Shown here piece by piece: positions 3,828-42,200 of a DNA stretch of 64,000 bases. Source of the stretch: Oikopleura dioica. Taxonomy: Eukaryota; Animalia; Chordata. The stretch spans positions 1,860,001 to 1,924,000 of the forward strand of contig OU015568.1 in NCBI GenBank assembly GCA_907165135.1. The letters run 5' to 3'. Under the pieces are notes generated by a model. It was not told the DNA's origin. It saw only the letters and a list, made by a program, of their open reading frames with translations, and did not search any database. The translations under genes and the position numbers were made by a program. How positions within the stretch are numbered: the stretch's first letter is position 1; every line of letters starts with the position of its first letter.

Positions 3828-5730
3828 TCAATTTTGCGCAAAGGAATTGTAAATGAATAATCGTTGAGTTTTGCCATTATTGAAGAACCAGAAAATCGTG
3901 CATCCAATAAACGCGGTCGAAATTCCAAGAGCTGGCCAAAGTGTGGCGTGGACCATTTGAGAAGTTTTGATGGCGCGGTCTTTTGCCACGTGAAGTGGGT
4001 TCTTTGAATCAATTGAAAAAAGACATGGATTGAATTGGATTTTAAAAAGTTACCTCTGTAGACTGAAAGCATGGAAATTGCTGACCGGGGCGTCCCCACT
4101 CGAGTTTGTAGAAATCAACTAAATGAGACTTGAATGAAATCTTTTCAGGATAAATTTTACCTGATAAATTGATGATGGTGTTGTTGCAAGCGCATTCTGG
4201 CGGATGATAACTACAGCTGAGAATGTCAGTAACAAATGAATACTCGTTCGGATGGAGCAGGTAATAAGGCTGTTCTCCGTAATTCGGCTCGACAGCTACC
4301 ACGATTTCAAGACATTTCAAAGTGCTTTTAGGATTTAAAACGACTTTTATTGGGAATTCCTTGCGTTGAAAATATTAACCCTTCCTGATACAACCTCGGT
4401 GAAGGACATTTGTCACTCATTTGGCCATGATGATGGTTCTCTAAGGAGTTTGATTGAGTTTTGTCAGGGCCCTTTCCTGGACATAAGACTTCTCCATTTA
4501 TACGAGACTCCATGACAGTACAGTTTGTTTCGGCGAAATAATATGACTTCATTCCAGGGCAGACGATCTTATAGAGGTTCACATATTTTTCTTATCAGAT
4601 TATCCGAGCTACTTAGGTAAGTAATGACATCAAGAGAAAGCTAGAACTTTCGAAAATCCTTTCAATTTAACCAATTCCCGTAAAAAACTATACAAAATAA
4701 AATTATTGAATATTAAGGTTTCTCTAATGTTGTTTTCTCTTTGAATCCCCTTTCCAGAATCGTATAAACGAGCGAGACGCATGACAAAATGAAGAGAAGA
4801 GTAACAACTGCAAGCGAAAATTGCGACGGTCCGGGGCAGCCGCAGATACTCTGTTTCAAACCTGAATAAAAATCATCAACGAAAATGATTCCATACGATC
4901 GGGAGAGTTTTGTTTGCTACATCTTCGACATTTCTCTGAATTTGACTGATCCTATTTTTCGGCGTTTTTGTCATTATTTTTAAATTGACGATTTTTTTTT
5001 AACTGGCGTGGAAAAAAGTGATAATCTTGTTTTCCCTGCGTGGGATCAAAGGGAGATCAGGGTTAAAAATTCAAAATAAAAAGTGGGCTCTTGAGCTGAC
5101 AACTGGGTGAAAAGGTTTTCGATGAACGGTGGTTTGAAATTTTGATGAGTTTGAACGTAGAAAAAACTGCCTTGGCTGGGAATTAACAGTTTTTTCAAAC
5201 CTGGTATTTTCGTCTTCTTAATCCCGCCGACGATTCGGTAACCACTTTCCTTGCGAATCGCGGCTCTAGAATAATATCTCGTATGTCCGCCTTGGCAGTT
5301 TCGCGGATTAAAACACTGCTCAGGGCCTCTGTAACACCTATCCTCTGTAGCCGCCCTAGAAAAATGCTTCATATTCCACATGATGATTTCTTTATTTTGA
5401 GTATAATGAGTTCTTTGAAAGTTTAGTTTTGTCGGAGCTGTCATTTGGTCACTTAGCAATTTATGAGACAAAACGCAGAAAAGTTGACTTTCAAGATGAT
5501 GCCAGGAATAATTTCACTCAAGAAAATATAGATTATTTTAGTAAAACGGATGATTTAAAACAGTTTGGTAGAATACTAAATTTTCTCCATCTTCTAGAAT
5601 TGGCAAAAATTCTGATCTTATACTGCTGGACAAAATTTCTGGTTCCTTATTGAATTCGTATTCTAGAGCCCCGCCTTGGCCTTCTATCATCTCTAAAGTT
5701 CTTCGAAAACGGTTTGGTCACAATATTCAT
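3828..5730 (-). CDS. BK-channel beta-subunit-like (KCNMB/CaKB family) two-TM protein; 5' exons tentative
   Basis: TM1 FSLAVVTLLFILSCVSLVYTIL, then ETNCTV, KCLEIVV, CSYHPPEC, FPCF and TM2 preceded by MVHATLWP. This mirrors the KCNMB pattern (ESxCT, PCLxVxV, CSYIP, FSCY, LFHSLFWP). Stop at 3828-3830. Confidence 0.7.
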
Positions 5731-10968: not shown

Positions 10969-12323
10969 TTTTGTCCTTTTTTTGTTTTTCTCTTTTTTAG
11001 TTTCTGTTTTTTCAAGATGCAAGCAAGTTCGATGTCTTTTGAATGTTCTATACACAGTTTATGGGCCCGCGGCAAGACTCGCCCGGTGCTAGAACACTGC
11101 AACTTTTGATACCATCACTCTTGATATTTTGGCCTGACACTAACAAGAGTTGTCGTCTCTATTCGATGATTTTAAAGAGCTTTGATCGGAAAGAAAGCGC
11201 TGAGTTGGCAAAAAAGGTCAAATGGCTTTTGAGCACGCACTTGAAACATCTCTCAAAAATAACCTAGAATTTTGGAAGTTCTACTCGCCGCCAATTTGCA
11301 CAAATGCTGACAGGAGGAAAATTCAATCAGGAAACAAATTGCGCAGAATGAGATTTGTTCGTTTTCTTGTGAAAATTTTTTGAATGCGCCCTATTCATTG
11401 TATGCTTCTAGAGCCGCACGTGAACGTTTTTCGCATAAGCGGTCGAAAAGCGTTCCCAGGTGCTTATGTCTGGCCAAGTCTTGGGCAGCCAGCCAACAAA
11501 TGTCAGACAAAGCAGAGTCTTCTGATTGACGATGAATGGGGATGGATAGAATATGTCATTTTTGTGATAAAAGAGTAAAATCACCAGTTTTGTTAATGAT
11601 TATCATTAAACATCACAAGATAAAAACAAAATTGTGGTCTTTTACCAGTAAAACTACAGTAGAATATTCAGAAAGGAATAAAAGTAATATTAGAAGAAGA
11701 ATTTGTCTTTGAAATTAATATTTAACTAAGACAAATTGAAAATTCCTACGTTGCCACTTTGTCGAGTGGTTTTGGAAAGGCGAAGAGGGATTTTGGTTGA
11801 TCCCGAAGCAGCAAAAAGCTCGTTTTATCTTTCATCTCCCCAGAGGAGCCCCTGTGAGAGCAGGGCGCGCAGTTTAGTTGCTCCAATTAGACAAGGGTGA
11901 AGACAGCCGTTACATAAAGTAGAGTCTATTGGTTGGAAACCGTTCAATTTACTCGAGACATCCCGGAACACGGCTGGATTTTTGTTGATTGAGTAGCTTT
12001 TTTTAAACTTGAGAGATGACCGAAAAGAAGAAATCAGGAGAAAATTAAAAGAGAGAAAATTAAAGAATTAATAAAAAAGATCAAAGGCAAGTTTTTACTT
12101 TTGCCTGATGACCTTGTTGATTAGGCTTTCTAGAGCCAAGAGCCATTTTGGCGCAATTTCAACCACCATCTTCCGCCCATGTTTTAGTTCAAAATTCCAA
12201 AGTAAATACGTGAAACTTGCGTAAATCAATAATAACGTAATCTTCGCAAGAATCTAAATTATACTTCCTCTTGAATAAACCCCTTTCCTGTCCAGAAGAG
12301 AATAAACTTATTTATAATCAAGG

Positions 12324-14395
12324 ATGGGAACAAAGAATGAAGCAGAAGAAAGTCCAGAGATTTCTTCGAGTTCGCGAAGATGGCTGATTATCTTGATTTT
12401 TTCCTGTTATTCGCTGACGAGCGCGTTTCAATGGATTGAGTTTGCGATTTTACCAGGCATCTTTACTGAATATTACGGGTAAGAATATGAAATGATATTG
12501 AACGTTAACTTTTTAATCAGAAAAAAAACCATAAACAGGAGAAAATTTCTTTGAATTTGATTTTTAAAATCGGCAACAATACGAAAAAATCTCCTCAACG
12601 CTTGTGTCACAATATGTACGATTCCTACCTGAAACTTTTACTCATATTTCTTTCGCATTTTGTCTTTCAGAATCAGTCCCAATTACGTCACATGGACATC
12701 TACAATCTACATGGCTACGTTCATTCCTCTCGTCTTCCCCGCCACTTGGCTGGTAGACAACACAGGGCTGAAAAACATCGCTCTCGTCGGGTCCGGAATG
12801 AATGCGCTGGGAGCACTGATAAAATGCCTCGGTCTCGGGCCAGACTCATTTTGGATCTGCTTCATCGGGCAGACAATTGCTGCCTGTGCCCAGGTAGGAC
12901 GAACATCTGTATGGAACACTGCCAGACTCGATTCTAGTGCCTTATTCTCGAGCTTCCACCGAAAATTGCCTCCGTTTGGTTTCCAGCGAATCAAGTTTCT
13001 ACTGCAACATCACTTGGAGTTTTCGGAAATCAACTTGGAGTCGCACTTGGTTTCTGTATTCCTCCGCTGATCGTGAAGGGGCCCTTGAAGATATTTGAAG
13101 ATGTAATGGTTGATCCTAAAGTTGATAACTCTACTTTCTCCGGAGGCTATCCTGGTGATTGGAGTGATGAGGAAAGCTGGGGAGTTAACACGACACAGTT
13201 GGCGAAGGTCGAAGTGAAGGAGCAACTTAGGAAATGTTGAAGTAGAATAAAAAGTCTTTCTTTTTCAAATATTTATGGGGGTTATTACCTTAGATAATTT
13301 ATGAAGCTCATATGCCGATGAAAATATGTCCTGAAGACGCTTGTTATATACTTTCATGACTCATTTATCGTTTTTAGAGATTTTTACTAGAATATTCAAC
13401 ATTTTAAAAGAATTTTATATTACGGACTTGGTGCAATAACCCTCCTCCTCTTCATCCTCGTTTGCCTTACCTTTGCTGATAAGCCGAAGAAATTCGCCAA
13501 CCGTGCTTCCCTTCGTCGATCGGAATTAAAAACTGACGAGTTGGCGAAAGAAAGTGTCATGGATTCGTTTAAAATTTATGGGCAGTCTTTGGTCAGATTG
13601 ATGAAAGACAAAGCCTTTGTGTTGCTGACAGTCTCTTATGGGTTGAATGTTGGTGTTTATTACGCGATTTCGACGCTTCTCAATCAGGTTCCAAATCTTG
13701 TTGGCATGATAATAAACAAGATCTCATTTAGATCATCAAACCAACCTTCTCTCCCGAAATCTACGACGAGCAATTTCTAGCCTCTCTGGACACCCAAATT
13801 GGCTTCATGGGAACAATGATGGTCGTCGCTGGCCTTGCTGGCTCTATCCTCGGTGGCGTCATCCTCGACAAGTTCAAGAAGTTCAAATTGACGACGCTCC
13901 TCTGCTATGGCCTCACGCTAGTGTTTATGGTGCTTTTCAGTATGACCGTCTCTCAAGCGAGCATACTGTGGGACTTTTTGTTCATCAGCGTTTTGGGCTT
14001 TTTCATGACTGGATATTTGCCGATTGGGTTCGAATTCGGGGCTGAATTGACTTACCCAGAATCGGAAGGTAAATGATAGCTGTGGTATTTTGATCGAGAA
14101 TATCTTTTTAGCGACGAGTTCTGGACTTCTCAACTGCGCTGCTCAGTTCTTCGGCTTTTCCGTCACTTTCATTTGCCAATCATTGGTGAACAATGTAAGT
14201 CATTTCCTTGTTTTCATCCAAATCTGACTGTAAATTCGACAATAGGAGGAGAACGGCGGAAGAAATGCAAACCTAGCGATGATAGGCTGCCTGGTTTTGG
14301 GACTGCTTTTGACAATGATGATCAAAGAAGACTTGAAACGACAATCTGCTGAGAACAACGAAGAAACCGAAAACCTCCAGAAACTAGACTCTTGA
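12324..14395 (+). CDS. FLVCR: FLVCR1/2 (SLC49A) MFS transporter
   Basis: [56 protein letters not shown] and [20 protein letters not shown] are FLVCR-family signatures. Confidence 0.9.
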
Positions 14396-21996: not shown

Positions 21997-23965
21997 ATGA
22001 ATCCTTTCCTTTTCTTTTTGCCGCTGATATGCGCGCAGGTAGAGCAAAAACACATGCTGTTCCTGACTGGGGAGGTCGATGGAGAGCGATATCAACAAGG
22101 AAGCTACAGCGTTCACGTGGATGTCTTCAATAAGCCGGTTGATGGAGTTCAGATTGCAAAAGCGGCGGAAACACCTTACGGGGTCTATCAGTCTAGCGGT
22201 GTGGACTCGAACGCGCTTTTCCAGACGATTCTTGCTTCGTTTACTCGATTGGAAGAGGCTGAGTTTGACTACGAACGACACATTTTCTGCCAAGGGCTCT
22301 AGAATCGCTAAAACAGAATAAATCTATCGAGGCGCGAAAAACTTTCGATTCTAGAGCCAATTTCAGCCATGGAGATCTTTGTCGAGTTCTCGATCAAATG
22401 TTACTCGAATATCCAGTTTACGCTGAGCTCCTGGACCTTGCCGGTATTTTCTACATGGGTCACATGACCGTTCCTCTTGAACGATTTGAACAAGGAGTCC
22501 TGAAGACCGACTACTTGGAGGGCGTTAGAAAATTCTACTGTGTCGGCCAGTATGATGGCAAATTCACGGTGGCTTCTGCTGCGAGAGCGTGGAACTTCAC
22601 TCAAGCAGTTCCAGACAGCTGGTTCGGGATCACTTTTGGCGGACGGCACAGACATTTTGGCGAGGGAATGAACTTTGTGATGGACGATATTGAGATTTTT
22701 GAAACGTCGAATACTGAATCAACCGTTCATGGAAAATTGAGAGAGGTTTTCAATCAACGAAGACTTTGTGTGTATTTTTAGTATTTTATGTTTTTCCTGT
22801 TCAACTTGCAAGATCGACTGGAACTCGAGCAGAGCTACTTTGATGCTGAAATTCGACCTATCATGTGAGAACAAACTTTTGCCTTTTCATAAATTTTCTT
22901 TTGAGGAATGAGCTGGCGATGGAACGAAGATTTACAACTCTCGAAGGCGATCTAGATAACCCAGATCAATCTCAAATCGAAGTTCCGCTCAATCCTCAAA
23001 TACAAAAAATGTTTTGCGAGGATGCGATTGAATCCATTCCTGGACGATCTTGTGTTGTTGAGCACGAGGTATCGCTATAGAAACTCAGATATGAGATGAT
23101 CTCGTGTTTTAGTGGCGACCAGAGTATGGAGTAGGTGATGGAGAAGGAAGTGATTACGAAGACATCGCAAATTCAAAACCAAAAGTCAGATATGATGAGC
23201 AAAATGATGCAATGATCATCGAATCTTACAGGATAAGTTTATGATTCAAAAACCATAATACATTCTAGTTTTGCTTCATATAAATTTTTTTTTTTATAAT
23301 TCATAAATTCTGAATTCATAGCTAATAAAAATGTGTGATATAAAAAAAGCTGACCCATAGAAAAAACTCAATAAAGTCACGATTACCATCAACCGCACCC
23401 TGGTTACACCTTCCCTCCACCAGGAACCCTCGGAAACGCTTCGAGCATCGACCTCGTCTTCAAATTCAAAAACCGAAAGTTCATCGCCCGCGCTGCCGGC
23501 ATCTCCGACTGGGAGTCCGTCCCTGAAGGTAACAAATTTCTCCCACCCATTTTTCATTTATTCTAGATACCTGCGACGAAATCATTCAACTCTTCGAAGC
23601 TCAAGCGCTCCAGACTTTGGCTGAATCGAAAAATGGCGCTCAACACTTGGAAAAATACGCACAATATGGATGCCAGCACAAGCTTGTTCCTGAACGAGAT
23701 ACATTCGGGATCTTCTGGCTGAACTCTCCGATGAAATACGAGTACAAGGATGGAAAACTCGAAATGGAACCGAATCGGTTTTATACCGACGAAACAAATA
23801 CTCCCGAAGAAAATCTTGGTAAGACAATTTTTTGCTCTAGAAATAGATGGGATTTTTTTAGATCGACTTGGAGGTATGCTCTACTGTCGGGTAGTTGGGC
23901 CGGCTAGATTTATCGAATGGATTCTTGTCGACAGCTTCAGAAGACGAAATTTGAGACTTTGTTGA
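21997..23965 (+). CDS. Secreted protein of unknown function, multi-exon with GC-AG/GA-AG introns
   Basis: Signal peptide MNPFLFFLPLICA. ORFs 21997, 22398, 22865, 23617 and 23750 link in frame using introns 22296-22354 (GC-AG), 22732-22812 and 23232-23376 (GA-AG) plus GT-AG introns. The protein ends GGMLYCRVVGPARFIEWILVDS...*. Confidence 0.65.
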
Positions 23966-39287: not shown

Positions 39288-42200
39288 ATGGCATTGAGAC
39301 TTGACGGAAAAGCGATTTCCGCGGAAATACGAGAAAATTTGAGGCAACAGGTTGAGAAGATAAGAGAGAGTGATGAGAGTTTTCGACCGGGACTGGCGAT
39401 TGTTCAAGAAAAAGGGTCTACCAACGCTAAATTATCAAGTTTTTCAATATGTTTTCAAATAAAAATCCTTCAAAAAGTCGGCGACAGAGAAGATTCTAAT
39501 GTCTATATCCGAATGAAACTCAGAGGAGCAAAGGAAATAGGCATGAATGCTGAGCATATCAAGCTCCCAAGGTTGGTTTAAAATTGAAAATTTCAAAAGT
39601 CAACTCGTAAGAGCGAAATCCGCTTGTTACGCAAAATTCTTGCAGACGAATTTCCAGCTAGACCTCTTCTGGAAAAGCGTGAAACTTTGTTACCTCAAGT
39701 TATTGCCATATTTAGCTAGTGACCATAAATTGATTCTTACGTAACTATCGTCGATGTTTTTTCAGAGACATCACCGAGGACGACCTGATTGCCAAGCTAA
39801 AGTTGCTCAACTCTGATGATTCTGTCGACGGAATCATCCTTCAACTCCCTCTCGACTCGTCCAATGGAATTGACGGAGAAAAGGTGACGGAGGAAATTTC
39901 GGAATGGAAAGATGTCGATGGGTTGACAACGATGACAGCTGGAAAATTGGCGCGAGGAGAGAAGGATATCTTCGTCCCTTGTACTCCTAAGGGTTGTATG
40001 GAACTGATCAACCGGGCGAACATGAAAACTACTGGGAAACGAGCGGTAGTTTTAGGCAGGAGCAAGATTGTCGGGACGCCGATGTCAGGAAGGGGTCATT
40101 TTGGAAATCATAATGTTCATTTTTTCCAAGGATTTAGGATTTTTATACCCACTTATACTCTGAAATTAAATATTAAGAAGCAAAAGATATTTTGTTTCAA
40201 ACCTGAGTTCGAATTCTATAAGCTAATAAATGATTTATTAGTATTAATGACGCGCTTTTTTTAAGGTTGGGCAAGTTATTTCACCCACATCTTGATTTTA
40301 AACCGTGGAACACCATACATATTTGGAATCAGCAGGATATTTTAAGAACTTTGACGGTTTTAGTTTCCAAAATTTCCACTTCCGGTCCGATTCTAGAGCC
40401 GGAAGTTGACGAAATTTTTGAGTTTGGCCAACTTGTGACCTATCAAATTGATTCTCAGACAATTTTCTATCATCTGAGAGAAGAATCAATGCCGACCGCG
40501 GTCAAATCAACCGCTAAAAACTGAAAGAAAAATCAGAAATTTATGCCTTTTTTCCTAGTTTTGCCGGTCGGTTTGACTGCGGTTGGGACGGTTTTTTTTA
40601 ATGATTTTAAAATGAGTTTACTCAAAATTTTCTGAGCATCAATTTGATAGGTCACAAGTTGGCCAAACTCAAAAATTTCGTCAACTTCCGGCTCTAGAAT
40701 CGGACCGGAAGTGGAAATTTTGGAAACTAAAACCGTCAAAGTTCTTAAAATTTCCTGCTGATTCCAAATATGTATGGCGTTCCAGGGTCTAAAATAAAGA
40801 AGTGGGTGAAATAACTTGCCCAACCTTAAAAAAAGCGCGTCAATGAAACCCTCCATGTTCTTAACCCTCATAAGACTTGCTAAAATGGGCAAATGCGACG
40901 GTCACGTGTTGCCACTCCAAAACAGAGGTAGGTGGTACCAAAATTCTTAGCGCGATTTCCTTATTCTTGATTTTTGACACGCCTACTTTCTGTCTTATCT
41001 CGCGAGTAGTAAACAAGAGACGCTATAAAATCAAGAGTTAATGACATCAAACTTAAGAACTTGGAAGAAATCTGCAGACAAGCAGATATACTCGTCGCTG
41101 CTGTTGGTAAGCCAGGTTTAGTAAAGAAAAGCTGGTTAAAAGAAGGAGCAGTGGTGATTGATTGCGGAATCAATCCTATTCCAGGCAGAGGGAAAATTAT
41201 CTAGCGCAAACTAGTTCGGAAAAGGCATTTGTTAAATCCCCTTCGAAAGAAAGTACAAAGAAATCTGGCCAGAGATTGGTTGGTGATGTCGATCCGGAGT
41301 GCTTTGAAACTGCATCTGCTATGACTCCAGTTCCTGGTGGTGTTGGACCGATGACTGTTGCCATGCTGCTGAAAAATACTTGCGAAGGAAGGGGTAAAAT
41401 TTAAAAACCATAAAGAAAAGGAGCCTTTGAAAACCCTGCACTTTATTCTCTTTTACTTAATTGAACAAACTACAAAATGATAGCATTTCGAGCAGGGTTC
41501 TAAATCGACTAGTCGAGTTTCGACTAAAGTCGAAGTCGAGTCGAGTCTTAGTCGAAAAGACTAGCTCGACTCGACTTGGTTGCTTGTGAGAAAAAGTCGA
41601 CTCGACTCGACTAGAAAATCATATTGATGTCGACTTAATTTCGACTAGTCGAATAAGTCGAAAAAGAAGTTCAAGATGTAGTCGAAAAAGTCGAAAATCA
41701 AGTCGAAAAAGTCGAAAATTGAGTCGAAAAAGTCGAAAATTTAGACGAATAAGTCGAATTGAAAAGTCGAAAACATTCGGCAGTGAACTCAAATCTTTTC
41801 TAGATTTTATAAAAATAGGAAGAATTTTCTGAAGATATCATATTTCTTATTTTTTAGAAGCGCTCCATCAGTCGCCATCCTTCTTTTTACCTCGCGCACC
41901 CTTGTTCGCTCCTCCTCACCCATTTATCCCTTGCTCGCCGCGAGACCGCCAAAGCCTAGCTCGGATTGGGTCGCTCTTACTTTTCATTAAGCTTTCCATA
42001 AAGAACAATATTTTCGATTTTCATGAATATTTTGACAGCAACTAAGCTTGATTGTGTGACTTCATATGTACATTTTTGCTCAAAGTAGTCGGATCTTCAA
42101 GTTCAGGCTGGTTCTTTTAACAAAGGCCGCGGAAATCCCCCGTAAACAATGCAAAGAGCTTATTTCACCCTAGCCTTCTTGGTAACTCAGATTTATCCGT

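Follow-up and report, generated by a model that had tools for sequence, protein, structure and literature searches.

How does a coding exon come to hold a perfect hairpin, and can such a hairpin be removed again as an intron? This question is raised by a block of 77 nucleotides (nt) in a 64,000-nt stretch of the genome of the larvacean Oikopleura dioica (C1:1860001-1924000 of the Okinawa assembly OKI2018_I69, which encompasses 64.28 Mb in 19 contigs). The whole stretch is referred to as the window, and positions given without a contig name are counted within it. The block (22293-22369, forward strand) interrupts the reading frame of a gene that is single-copy in this genome and whose product resembles a secreted protein. 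Introns are short and often unconventional here, with a median of 49 nt and with 11% having ends other than GT/AG (PMC8008620). The best overall explanation, to which we assign a rough probability of 0.58, is that a non-autonomous hairpin element of about 68 nt was inserted into the exon and that the block is since spliced out as a non-GT intron.

The block consists of 2 nt, a 64-nt hairpin, another 2 nt and a 9-nt repeat copy, and all of its parts are described on the forward strand. The left arm of the hairpin, the 13-mer GGCTCTAGAATCG (22295-22307), and the right arm CGATTCTAGAGCC (22346-22358) are read directly at the places named in the original prediction, are exact complements and pair perfectly (13/13). 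They enclose a unique interior of 38 nt (22308-22345) with a single match in the genome and none in Rfam. The 13-bp stem is present in the predicted fold of the block (-24.7 kcal/mol, z -2.45). An Rfam search of the hairpin block gave no significant match, the best being MIR1223 with 17 bits, where the gathering score is 77, and a mirtron or pre-miRNA hairpin was rejected on the basis of a 13-bp stem and a 38-nt loop, where about 22 bp or more would be expected. Outside each arm follow two spacer nucleotides (AG at 22293-22294, AA at 22359-22360) and then two similar 9-mers, TTTCTGCCA on the left (22284-22292) and TTTCAGCCA on the right (22361-22369). These agree at 8 of 9 positions (4 nt exact), a match equalled by 9 of 2000 flank shuffles. 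As GCCA is repeated, the block may equally well be placed at 22289-22365. The single difference, a T-to-A change in the right copy, makes TTTCAG/ (a slash marks a possible cut). If the repeat is taken instead as a 12-nt duplication of TTTCTGCCATGG, there is one T-to-A change in each copy and each change generates an AG, and both of these new AGs stand at splice-like places, CAAG/G in the left copy and TTTCAG/ in the right.

The evidence that something was gained comes from orthologues in cryptic lineages, recovered from Tara and Joint Genome Institute (JGI) marine metagenome contigs and representing three lineages: L038 (ENA ERZ27251157 k141_2007483), a group of four contigs (L042, L044, L045 and L046), and L043. 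In all three TTTTCTGCCATGG is read without interruption, the left copy at 22284-22292 being the ancestral target, and the alignments with the six contigs lack exactly the 77 nt present in the window. The empty-site alignment called for in the original prediction has thus yielded three Oikopleura lineages without the block. Even distant homologues (P0003 and P0004, 39% identity) have F(I/S)CHG unbroken at the insertion site. Judged from these alignments, the block is probably a derived insertion.

The host gene begins with an exon (21997-22295, forward strand) that carries the start codon and a signal-peptide-like N-terminus, MNPFLFFLPLICAQV, within an open frame extending to 22302. This open frame is 75% identical to residues 4-100 of the orthologue P0002, and the orthologues start in the same way as the window gene (M...FLPLI(W/C)AQ...EQKHMLFLTGEVDGE). 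Left unspliced, the frame meets a TAG at 22300-22302. The second exon (22367-22745, or starting at 22355 or 22357 with a shorter intron) continues in a frame matching P0001, P0002 and P0012, and is followed by a GT-AG intron (22746-22781); both are on the forward strand. No Pfam family was found for the exons, P0002, P0003, P0011 or P0012. In the orthologue comparison the nonsynonymous divergence (dN) is 0.16-0.18 for exon 1 and 0.14-0.16 for exon 2, while the synonymous divergence (dS) is saturated. Exon 1 has accordingly stayed under constraint for most of the divergence, and since it is as constrained as exon 2, the block would probably be spliced out, as far as can be told from sequence.

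Enumeration of the frame-preserving, stop-free excisions gives four junctions. The original prediction had proposed a frame-restoring GC-AG intron of 59 nt (22296-22354, adding the residues QGANFS). It does join both open frames, but it is only one of the four. The others are a GG-AG intron of 62 nt (22295-22356, adding five residues), a GC-AG intron of 71 nt (22296-22366, forward strand, adding QG), and a CC-AG intron of 77 nt (22290-22366), which is collinear with the orthologues and yields FCHGDLC. The candidate donors, GC at 22296 and GG at 22295, both lie in the left arm, while the candidate acceptors lie within the right arm (after 22354 and 22356) and, in the repeat copy, after 22366 (TTTCAG/). 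Among these the 71-nt junction appears more likely than its alternatives, because its donor starts with G, because its acceptor arose from the change in the right repeat copy, and because an AG follows the right arm at a distance of 8-10 nt in all six of the coding-embedded hairpins described below (8 nt in the window). A fixed boundary of the form G/GCTCTAG...CTAG/AGCC, as originally proposed, is not established, given four frame-preserving junctions. It fits the frames in four of the six members; in the remaining two, the frame is kept only with a GG donor or a downstream AG.

The three junctions of 59, 62 and 71 nt all start with G, end with AG and are non-GT, and the collinear 77-nt CC-AG junction keeps the frame as well. 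A less conventional, and rather unlikely, possibility is that the spliceosome cuts according to the position of the stem rather than by dinucleotides, using C-start junctions outside the stem. The element and one target copy would then, with the same low probability, be removed exactly, as CC-AG at 22290-22366 in the window and as CT-AG at the second locus discussed below. Such stem-set cutting is allowed by the conserved CHG motif, which only collinear junctions keep, by a 1-nt indel that a close relative has at that second locus, and by the fact that exon 1 is left unjoined in the public annotation.

The arm sequence is not confined to this gene. The window holds four exact copies of the 13-mer, and 13 matches with up to two mismatches compared to 1.16 expected from shuffles. 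The related words GCTCTAGAAT and GCTCTAGAA occur six and 11 times, compared to 0.12 and 0.42 expected. Across the genome there are 254 copies of the 13-mer and none of its reversed control, which rules out that it is simply a common word, a reservation raised in the original prediction. The 13-mer is a repeat-family word rather than a product of chance, and base composition offers no explanation. Most of the genomic copies are arranged in pairs, the complement followed by the forward word, about 300 bp apart.

The opposite arrangement, with the two arms facing inwards as in the window gene, also occurs. Exact pairs of GGCTCTAG...CTAGAGCC are found at four loci with a gap of 20-50 nt, at eight with 51-81 nt and at none with 82-112 nt, and the looser pair CTCTAGAA...TTCTAGAG at 20 loci; the reversed controls give none in either search. 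Of the 12 exact inward pairs, seven lie at the centre of a foldback or satellite repeat. Six hairpins, 57-84 nt in length, lie between long open frames on the same strand (22295-22358 in the window, C1:2502747, C4:2749354, C4:2107624, C4:2835263 and C4:1857640). Inserts with GGCTCTAGAA arms are thus present in at least five other coding exons, namely in a DOCK, an MFS and a CHGN gene and in two unnamed genes, so that further candidate introns with the motif, sought in the original prediction, do exist; their interiors are unrelated. Comparison to Pfam profiles shows that the sequences flanking the insert are consecutive both in the MFS gene (MFS_1 positions 54-171, then 188-241) and in the CHGN gene (positions 253-317, then 349-391), and one hairpin lies downstream of a DOCK_C-D_N domain. 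The idea of a transposon-derived family of introns is hence borne out as regards the empty sites, the 8/9 repeat and the shared arms, though not as regards the unrelated interiors and the lack of a second copy.

The sequence of events that would fit these data is as follows. In the Okinawa lineage, an element of about 68 nt, with two 13-bp inverted arms (GGCTCTAGAATCG) and a unique 38-nt core, would have entered a coding exon of the single-copy gene for a secreted protein and duplicated about 9 nt of its target (TTTCTGCCA). In the pre-mRNA the arms may then pair as a 13-bp stem and draw the two ends together, allowing a permissive Oikopleura spliceosome to excise the block as a short non-GT intron. 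The donor would be the GC beginning with base 2 of the left arm. As acceptor, the AG of the duplicated target copy, 8 nt past the right arm (TTTCAG/), would be more likely than one within that arm. That a transposase made the insertion is given slightly better than even odds. The action of a transposase rather than break repair, the role of the arms in splicing and the positions of the cuts are points that we infer.

A number of observations weigh against this reading, and they are taken up here and in the following paragraphs with the rivals that they favor. One concerns timing. The comparison lineages are deeply diverged from the window (dS above 1), so a recent insertion is not established. 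The dS values also suggest the topology (window, (L038, (L042, L043))), under which a single loss is no less parsimonious than a single gain. The block might accordingly be an old hairpin intron, kept in Okinawa and precisely lost in the ancestor of the other lineages, its arms being held by selection for a splicing stem. Information pertinent to this rival comes from the MFS locus (C4:2835263, L095), where the orthologues L098 and L100, from two lineages, lack a block of 83 nt. This block equals the arm-to-arm distance (70 nt) plus 13 nt, the architecture also found in the window. A close relative, L099, has the hairpin and exons that are 93.8% identical; 28 of the 34 differences fall at third positions (28 of the 184 third codon positions compared). 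Here both arms are unchanged, while the interior has accumulated about eight substitutions and five indels, as expected if the arms are maintained. Moreover, one of the indels in L099, of 1 nt, falls in the stretch that separates the right arm from the CAG downstream of it. This stretch is thus probably intronic there, in conflict with the fixed boundary, which would make it coding.

The picture becomes patchier when the second MFS paralogue is included. Paralogue B is without an intron at the site both in this genome (C1:14750559, L103) and in L101, but in another lineage (L102) this position is occupied by a degenerate hairpin intron. The resemblance between this intron and the block of the first paralogue exceeds that of shuffles only modestly, being reached by 63 of 2000 and 21 of 2000 shuffles (p about 0.01-0.03). 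Either the site has gained an intron in parallel, or an old one has been lost repeatedly, and hairpin introns may be old, selection on the stem having preserved them. The MFS evidence thereby weakens the claim that the window intron is recent, though not that it originated by insertion. As regards the window locus itself, ancient retention is at odds with the distant homologues, which have neither the intron nor extra codons, and with the 8/9 flanking repeat, a signature of insertion, although constraint would also preserve it. Exact loss would in addition imply a collinear Okinawa mRNA and therefore a CC-AG (or GC-CA) intron, which is not a described Oikopleura type, and the ultimate origin of the intron would still be an insertion. 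Retention is unlikely on balance, but it is the rival to be taken most seriously.

The public gene model may be taken to tell a different story, in which the insertion is never spliced. OKI2018_I69.PAR.g8946.t1 (P0012, 406 amino acids), built with RNA-seq hints, begins at an ATG at 22398, ignores exon 1 and so skips the first 134 codons. A disruptive insertion might thus have severed the signal-peptide exon, leaving the gene to start downstream, maybe from a promoter active in spermatogenesis. The hexamer TCTAGA is a spermatogenic core promoter element of O. dioica, situated 40-50 nt upstream of male-specific starts (PMC6389100, Danks et al. 2018). It also forms the centre of both arms, and the second TCTAGA of the hairpin (22350-22355) lies about 45 nt upstream of 22398. 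The perfect 13/13 arms would also fit a young insertion. Yet the skipped codons include the start and the signal-like peptide that are kept in all orthologues. Exon 1 is intact, with a conserved start and a dN like that of exon 2, and a protein minus its signal peptide would probably be useless. Both changes in the repeat copies, furthermore, generate splice-like AGs, and five more hairpins with the same arms stand between exons that need joining, as the Pfam continuity of the MFS and CHGN genes indicates. Permanent disruption is consequently improbable, somewhat more so than retention. A possibility weaker than that of stem-set cutting is that the inserted TCTAGA pair may also serve as a testis-specific internal promoter. 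A protein search with P0002 returned only the truncated NCBI model, and a search with exon 2 for RNA or cDNA gave as its sole match one sister-lineage fragment. Two exact-word scans of the JGI metagenome contigs with the Okinawa-specific flanks gave no match.

A further difficulty is that copies of the element itself are missing. The 84-nt stretch 22285-22368 matches only itself in a genome search, and the hairpin members have in common only 10-13 nt of arm. Accordingly, copy-based proof of mobility is missing, and without a second copy of its 64-nt unit the block, called Introner-like in the original prediction, is no Introner if that term is strictly reserved for multi-copy families. At the other five members no flanking repeats above chance were found. 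The open reading frames beside 13-mers located outside the foldback elements treated below include no transposase and encode Ty3/gypsy reverse transcriptase, RNase H and integrase instead. Several of these 13-mers lie inside such frames (L028 at C2:450157, L032 at C3:756095, L036 at C5:1487945 and L031 at C3:707100), where they are ordinary coding sequence of a multi-copy element.

The only abundant element that carries the 13-mer is a foldback miniature inverted-repeat transposable element (MITE), and it carries the word in a different way. The window copy (593 bp, 40249-40841, with no strand assigned) has the termini GACGCGC.../...GCGCGTC and is flanked by a duplication of AAT (40246-40248 and 40842-40844). 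Its 13-mer pair (40388-40400 and 40690-40702) confirms that the inverted pair is shared between hairpin and MITE. The word is not a terminal repeat of the MITE, however, as it lies 139 bp inside each end and faces outwards, with the complement first. In the intron it stands at the ends and faces inwards; the block (22293-22369) lacks the MITE termini, its repeat is of 9 nt rather than 3 bp, and nothing beyond the 13 bases is in common. The MITE termini, defined from eight copies as GACGYGCTTTTTTTAAGG... / GACGYGC, are accompanied in 8/8 copies by A/T-rich 3-bp duplications (AAT, AAA, TTT, ACT or ATT). The family has 142 candidate places in the genome, with at least some 40 loci noted in addition to the window copy, and its best copies are 96-99% identical, which suggests that it was recently active. 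Over their full length its arms are self-complementary at 85%; no autonomous parent of the family was found. Twenty 13-mer loci that were read belong to a foldback MITE superfamily, in which the 13-mer is the sole block that stays constant across diverged subfamilies. It is there placed within the loop of a local CTTCCGG/CCGGAAG hairpin, followed by a variable base. A right-flank extension AATTTC was considered as a further shared feature and rejected, since it is not general.

These observations may favor an origin without any transposase, namely the repair of a staggered double-strand break, in which captured or fold-back filler copied the common GGCTCTAGAATCG and the direct repeat represents fill-in. 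Short flanking repeats are a published signature of intron gains by break repair (reviewed in PMC3443670). The unique interior, the lack of an autonomous element or transposase tied to the arms, and the absence of target duplication at the other members all agree with such an event. On the other hand, identity to the MITE ends exactly at the edges of the 13-mer in both arms, while templated copying should have carried neighboring MITE bases along. It would also have to account for at least six independent loci with the same arms, the same inward geometry and a narrow length range of 57-84 nt, as well as for two loci (window and MFS) with the arm-to-arm plus 13 nt architecture. Break repair is the least credible of the rivals discussed so far.

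The last difficulty is that the shorter word GGCTCTAGAA is common, with 1057 genomic copies compared to 178 of its reversed control, an about six-fold excess. Since TCTAGA is the core of GGCTCTAGAA, causes other than transposition could have spread the word. GCTCTAGAA may be an extended form of the published promoter motif, and the arm may represent a putative protein-binding module common to repeats, promoters and introns. The AG of TCTAGA is moreover usable as a trans-splice acceptor (PMC6389100). In the hairpin the same motif closes an intron-like structure, unlike the promoter element, which serves transcription and lies 40-50 nt upstream of starts. The frequency of GGCTCTAGAA might even be taken to indicate that two copies of a frequent word have merely paired by chance around a frame-restoring stretch. 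With about 250 copies of the 13-mer in 64 Mb, the expected number of exact inward pairs within 100 nt is nevertheless far below 0.01. The reversed controls give none, and the block coincides exactly with the stretch missing in the orthologues. Coincidence is thereby refuted, with a next to negligible probability left to it. Sites of the GCTCTAGAA/GGCTCTAGAA type in the window are found at 11406, 12128, 17940, 23834 and 34864, and one copy of GCTCTAGAA lies within the last intron of the host gene (23818-23860).

Other features of the host gene also deserve mention. L038 has a private GT-AG intron of 41 nt (at about 330-400), located 75 nt downstream of the insertion site of the window and missing from both the window and the other lineages. 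It begins with GTAAGCTCTAGG, contains GCTCTAG and is flanked by TTAG and TTTAG. Together with the insertion in the window, this points to intron turnover in two lineages of one small gene. The public model further includes an apparent non-GT intron of 145 nt (23230-23374, probably GA-AG), between the codons for ...IIESY and SHDYHQ...

Some other inward pairs were examined as candidate introns and rejected. The stretch of 409 bp at 5262-5670 (reverse strand, single-copy in the genome), bounded by inward GGCTCTAGAAT arms, does have the 11-nt version of the arms (5262-5272 and 5660-5670) that had linked it to the hairpin in the original prediction. As a GC-AG intron it fails, since the frame of an IVGG protease shows stops six codons upstream of the junction. 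Two near-identical inward pairs of 66 nt (L039, C2:3932981-3933046, and L040, C4:7866745-7866810) are centres of satellite-like foldbacks, which are long palindromes whose tandem units measure about 63 nt and each carry GGCTCTAGAAT. Two more (L041, C5:11221491-11224661, and L094, C1:12353315-12353990) are foldback repeats. They belong to a second foldback family, in which 22-bp arms that begin with GGCTCTAGAAAAA close a central loop, and several copies lie together in a few kb.

How does the locus compare to known cases of intron gain by mobile elements? In Fritillaria borealis, introns derived from MITEs are non-canonical, with inverted repeats and target duplications, and a U2-type spliceosome that tolerates odd ends removes them, according to PMC11282704 on Henriet 2019. 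Like these, the probable intron described here belongs to a larvacean. It is short, non-GT and specific to one lineage, and it has inverted repeats at its ends and duplicated target sequence where it borders on the exons. It differs in species and in sequence, and while AG-AC or AG-AT ends prevail in the Fritillaria introns, which dominate their genome, the Oikopleura intron probably has a GC (or GG) donor and an AG acceptor and belongs to about six seen, with unrelated interiors. Introners are known from Micromonas, fungi and dinoflagellates (Gozashti et al. 2022, as cited in PMC11282704). With them the block shares the likely insertion of a DNA element into an exon and its putative removal by splicing, inverted repeats with a target duplication, and presence or absence between lineages. 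Introners nonetheless form tens to thousands of copies similar over their full length, whereas this unit has no second copy and shares only arms of 10-13 nt. Introns gained by transposon insertion have also been credited to Oikopleura itself (Table 1 of PMC3443670, an entry citing Denoeud 2010). The species complex and the proposed route are the same, but the empty-site evidence for the present locus comes from metagenome contigs of cryptic lineages.

Non-GT introns closed by a stem offer a further parallel, one example in the window being an FLVCR intron (13231-13410) that was read directly for comparison. The block resembles such introns in having a candidate non-GT donor, a stem that ties the ends together and an AG a few bases past the 3' arm. 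Its stem is unusually long (13 bp) and identical to that of other introns and to a MITE motif, and an empty site and a repeat document the insertion. The locus is hence a clean new example of the known larvacean route from transposon to intron, and not a new kind of element.

The origin of introns is still argued mostly from indirect evidence. At this locus a filled site, three empty sites, a target repeat, a perfect hairpin and two changes that create AGs are brought together, in a chordate with massive intron turnover and about 11% non-GT introns, and the public gene model is shown to be short by the first 134 codons. One stem sequence ties together at least six introns, an active MITE and a germline promoter motif. 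If the stem does set the cuts, splicing would restore the ancestral FCHGDLC protein, and such insertions would be phenotypically silent. The locus may thus serve as a testable handle on whether tiny mobile elements have seeded the odd, stem-closed introns of Oikopleura, and on whether the stem guides their splicing.

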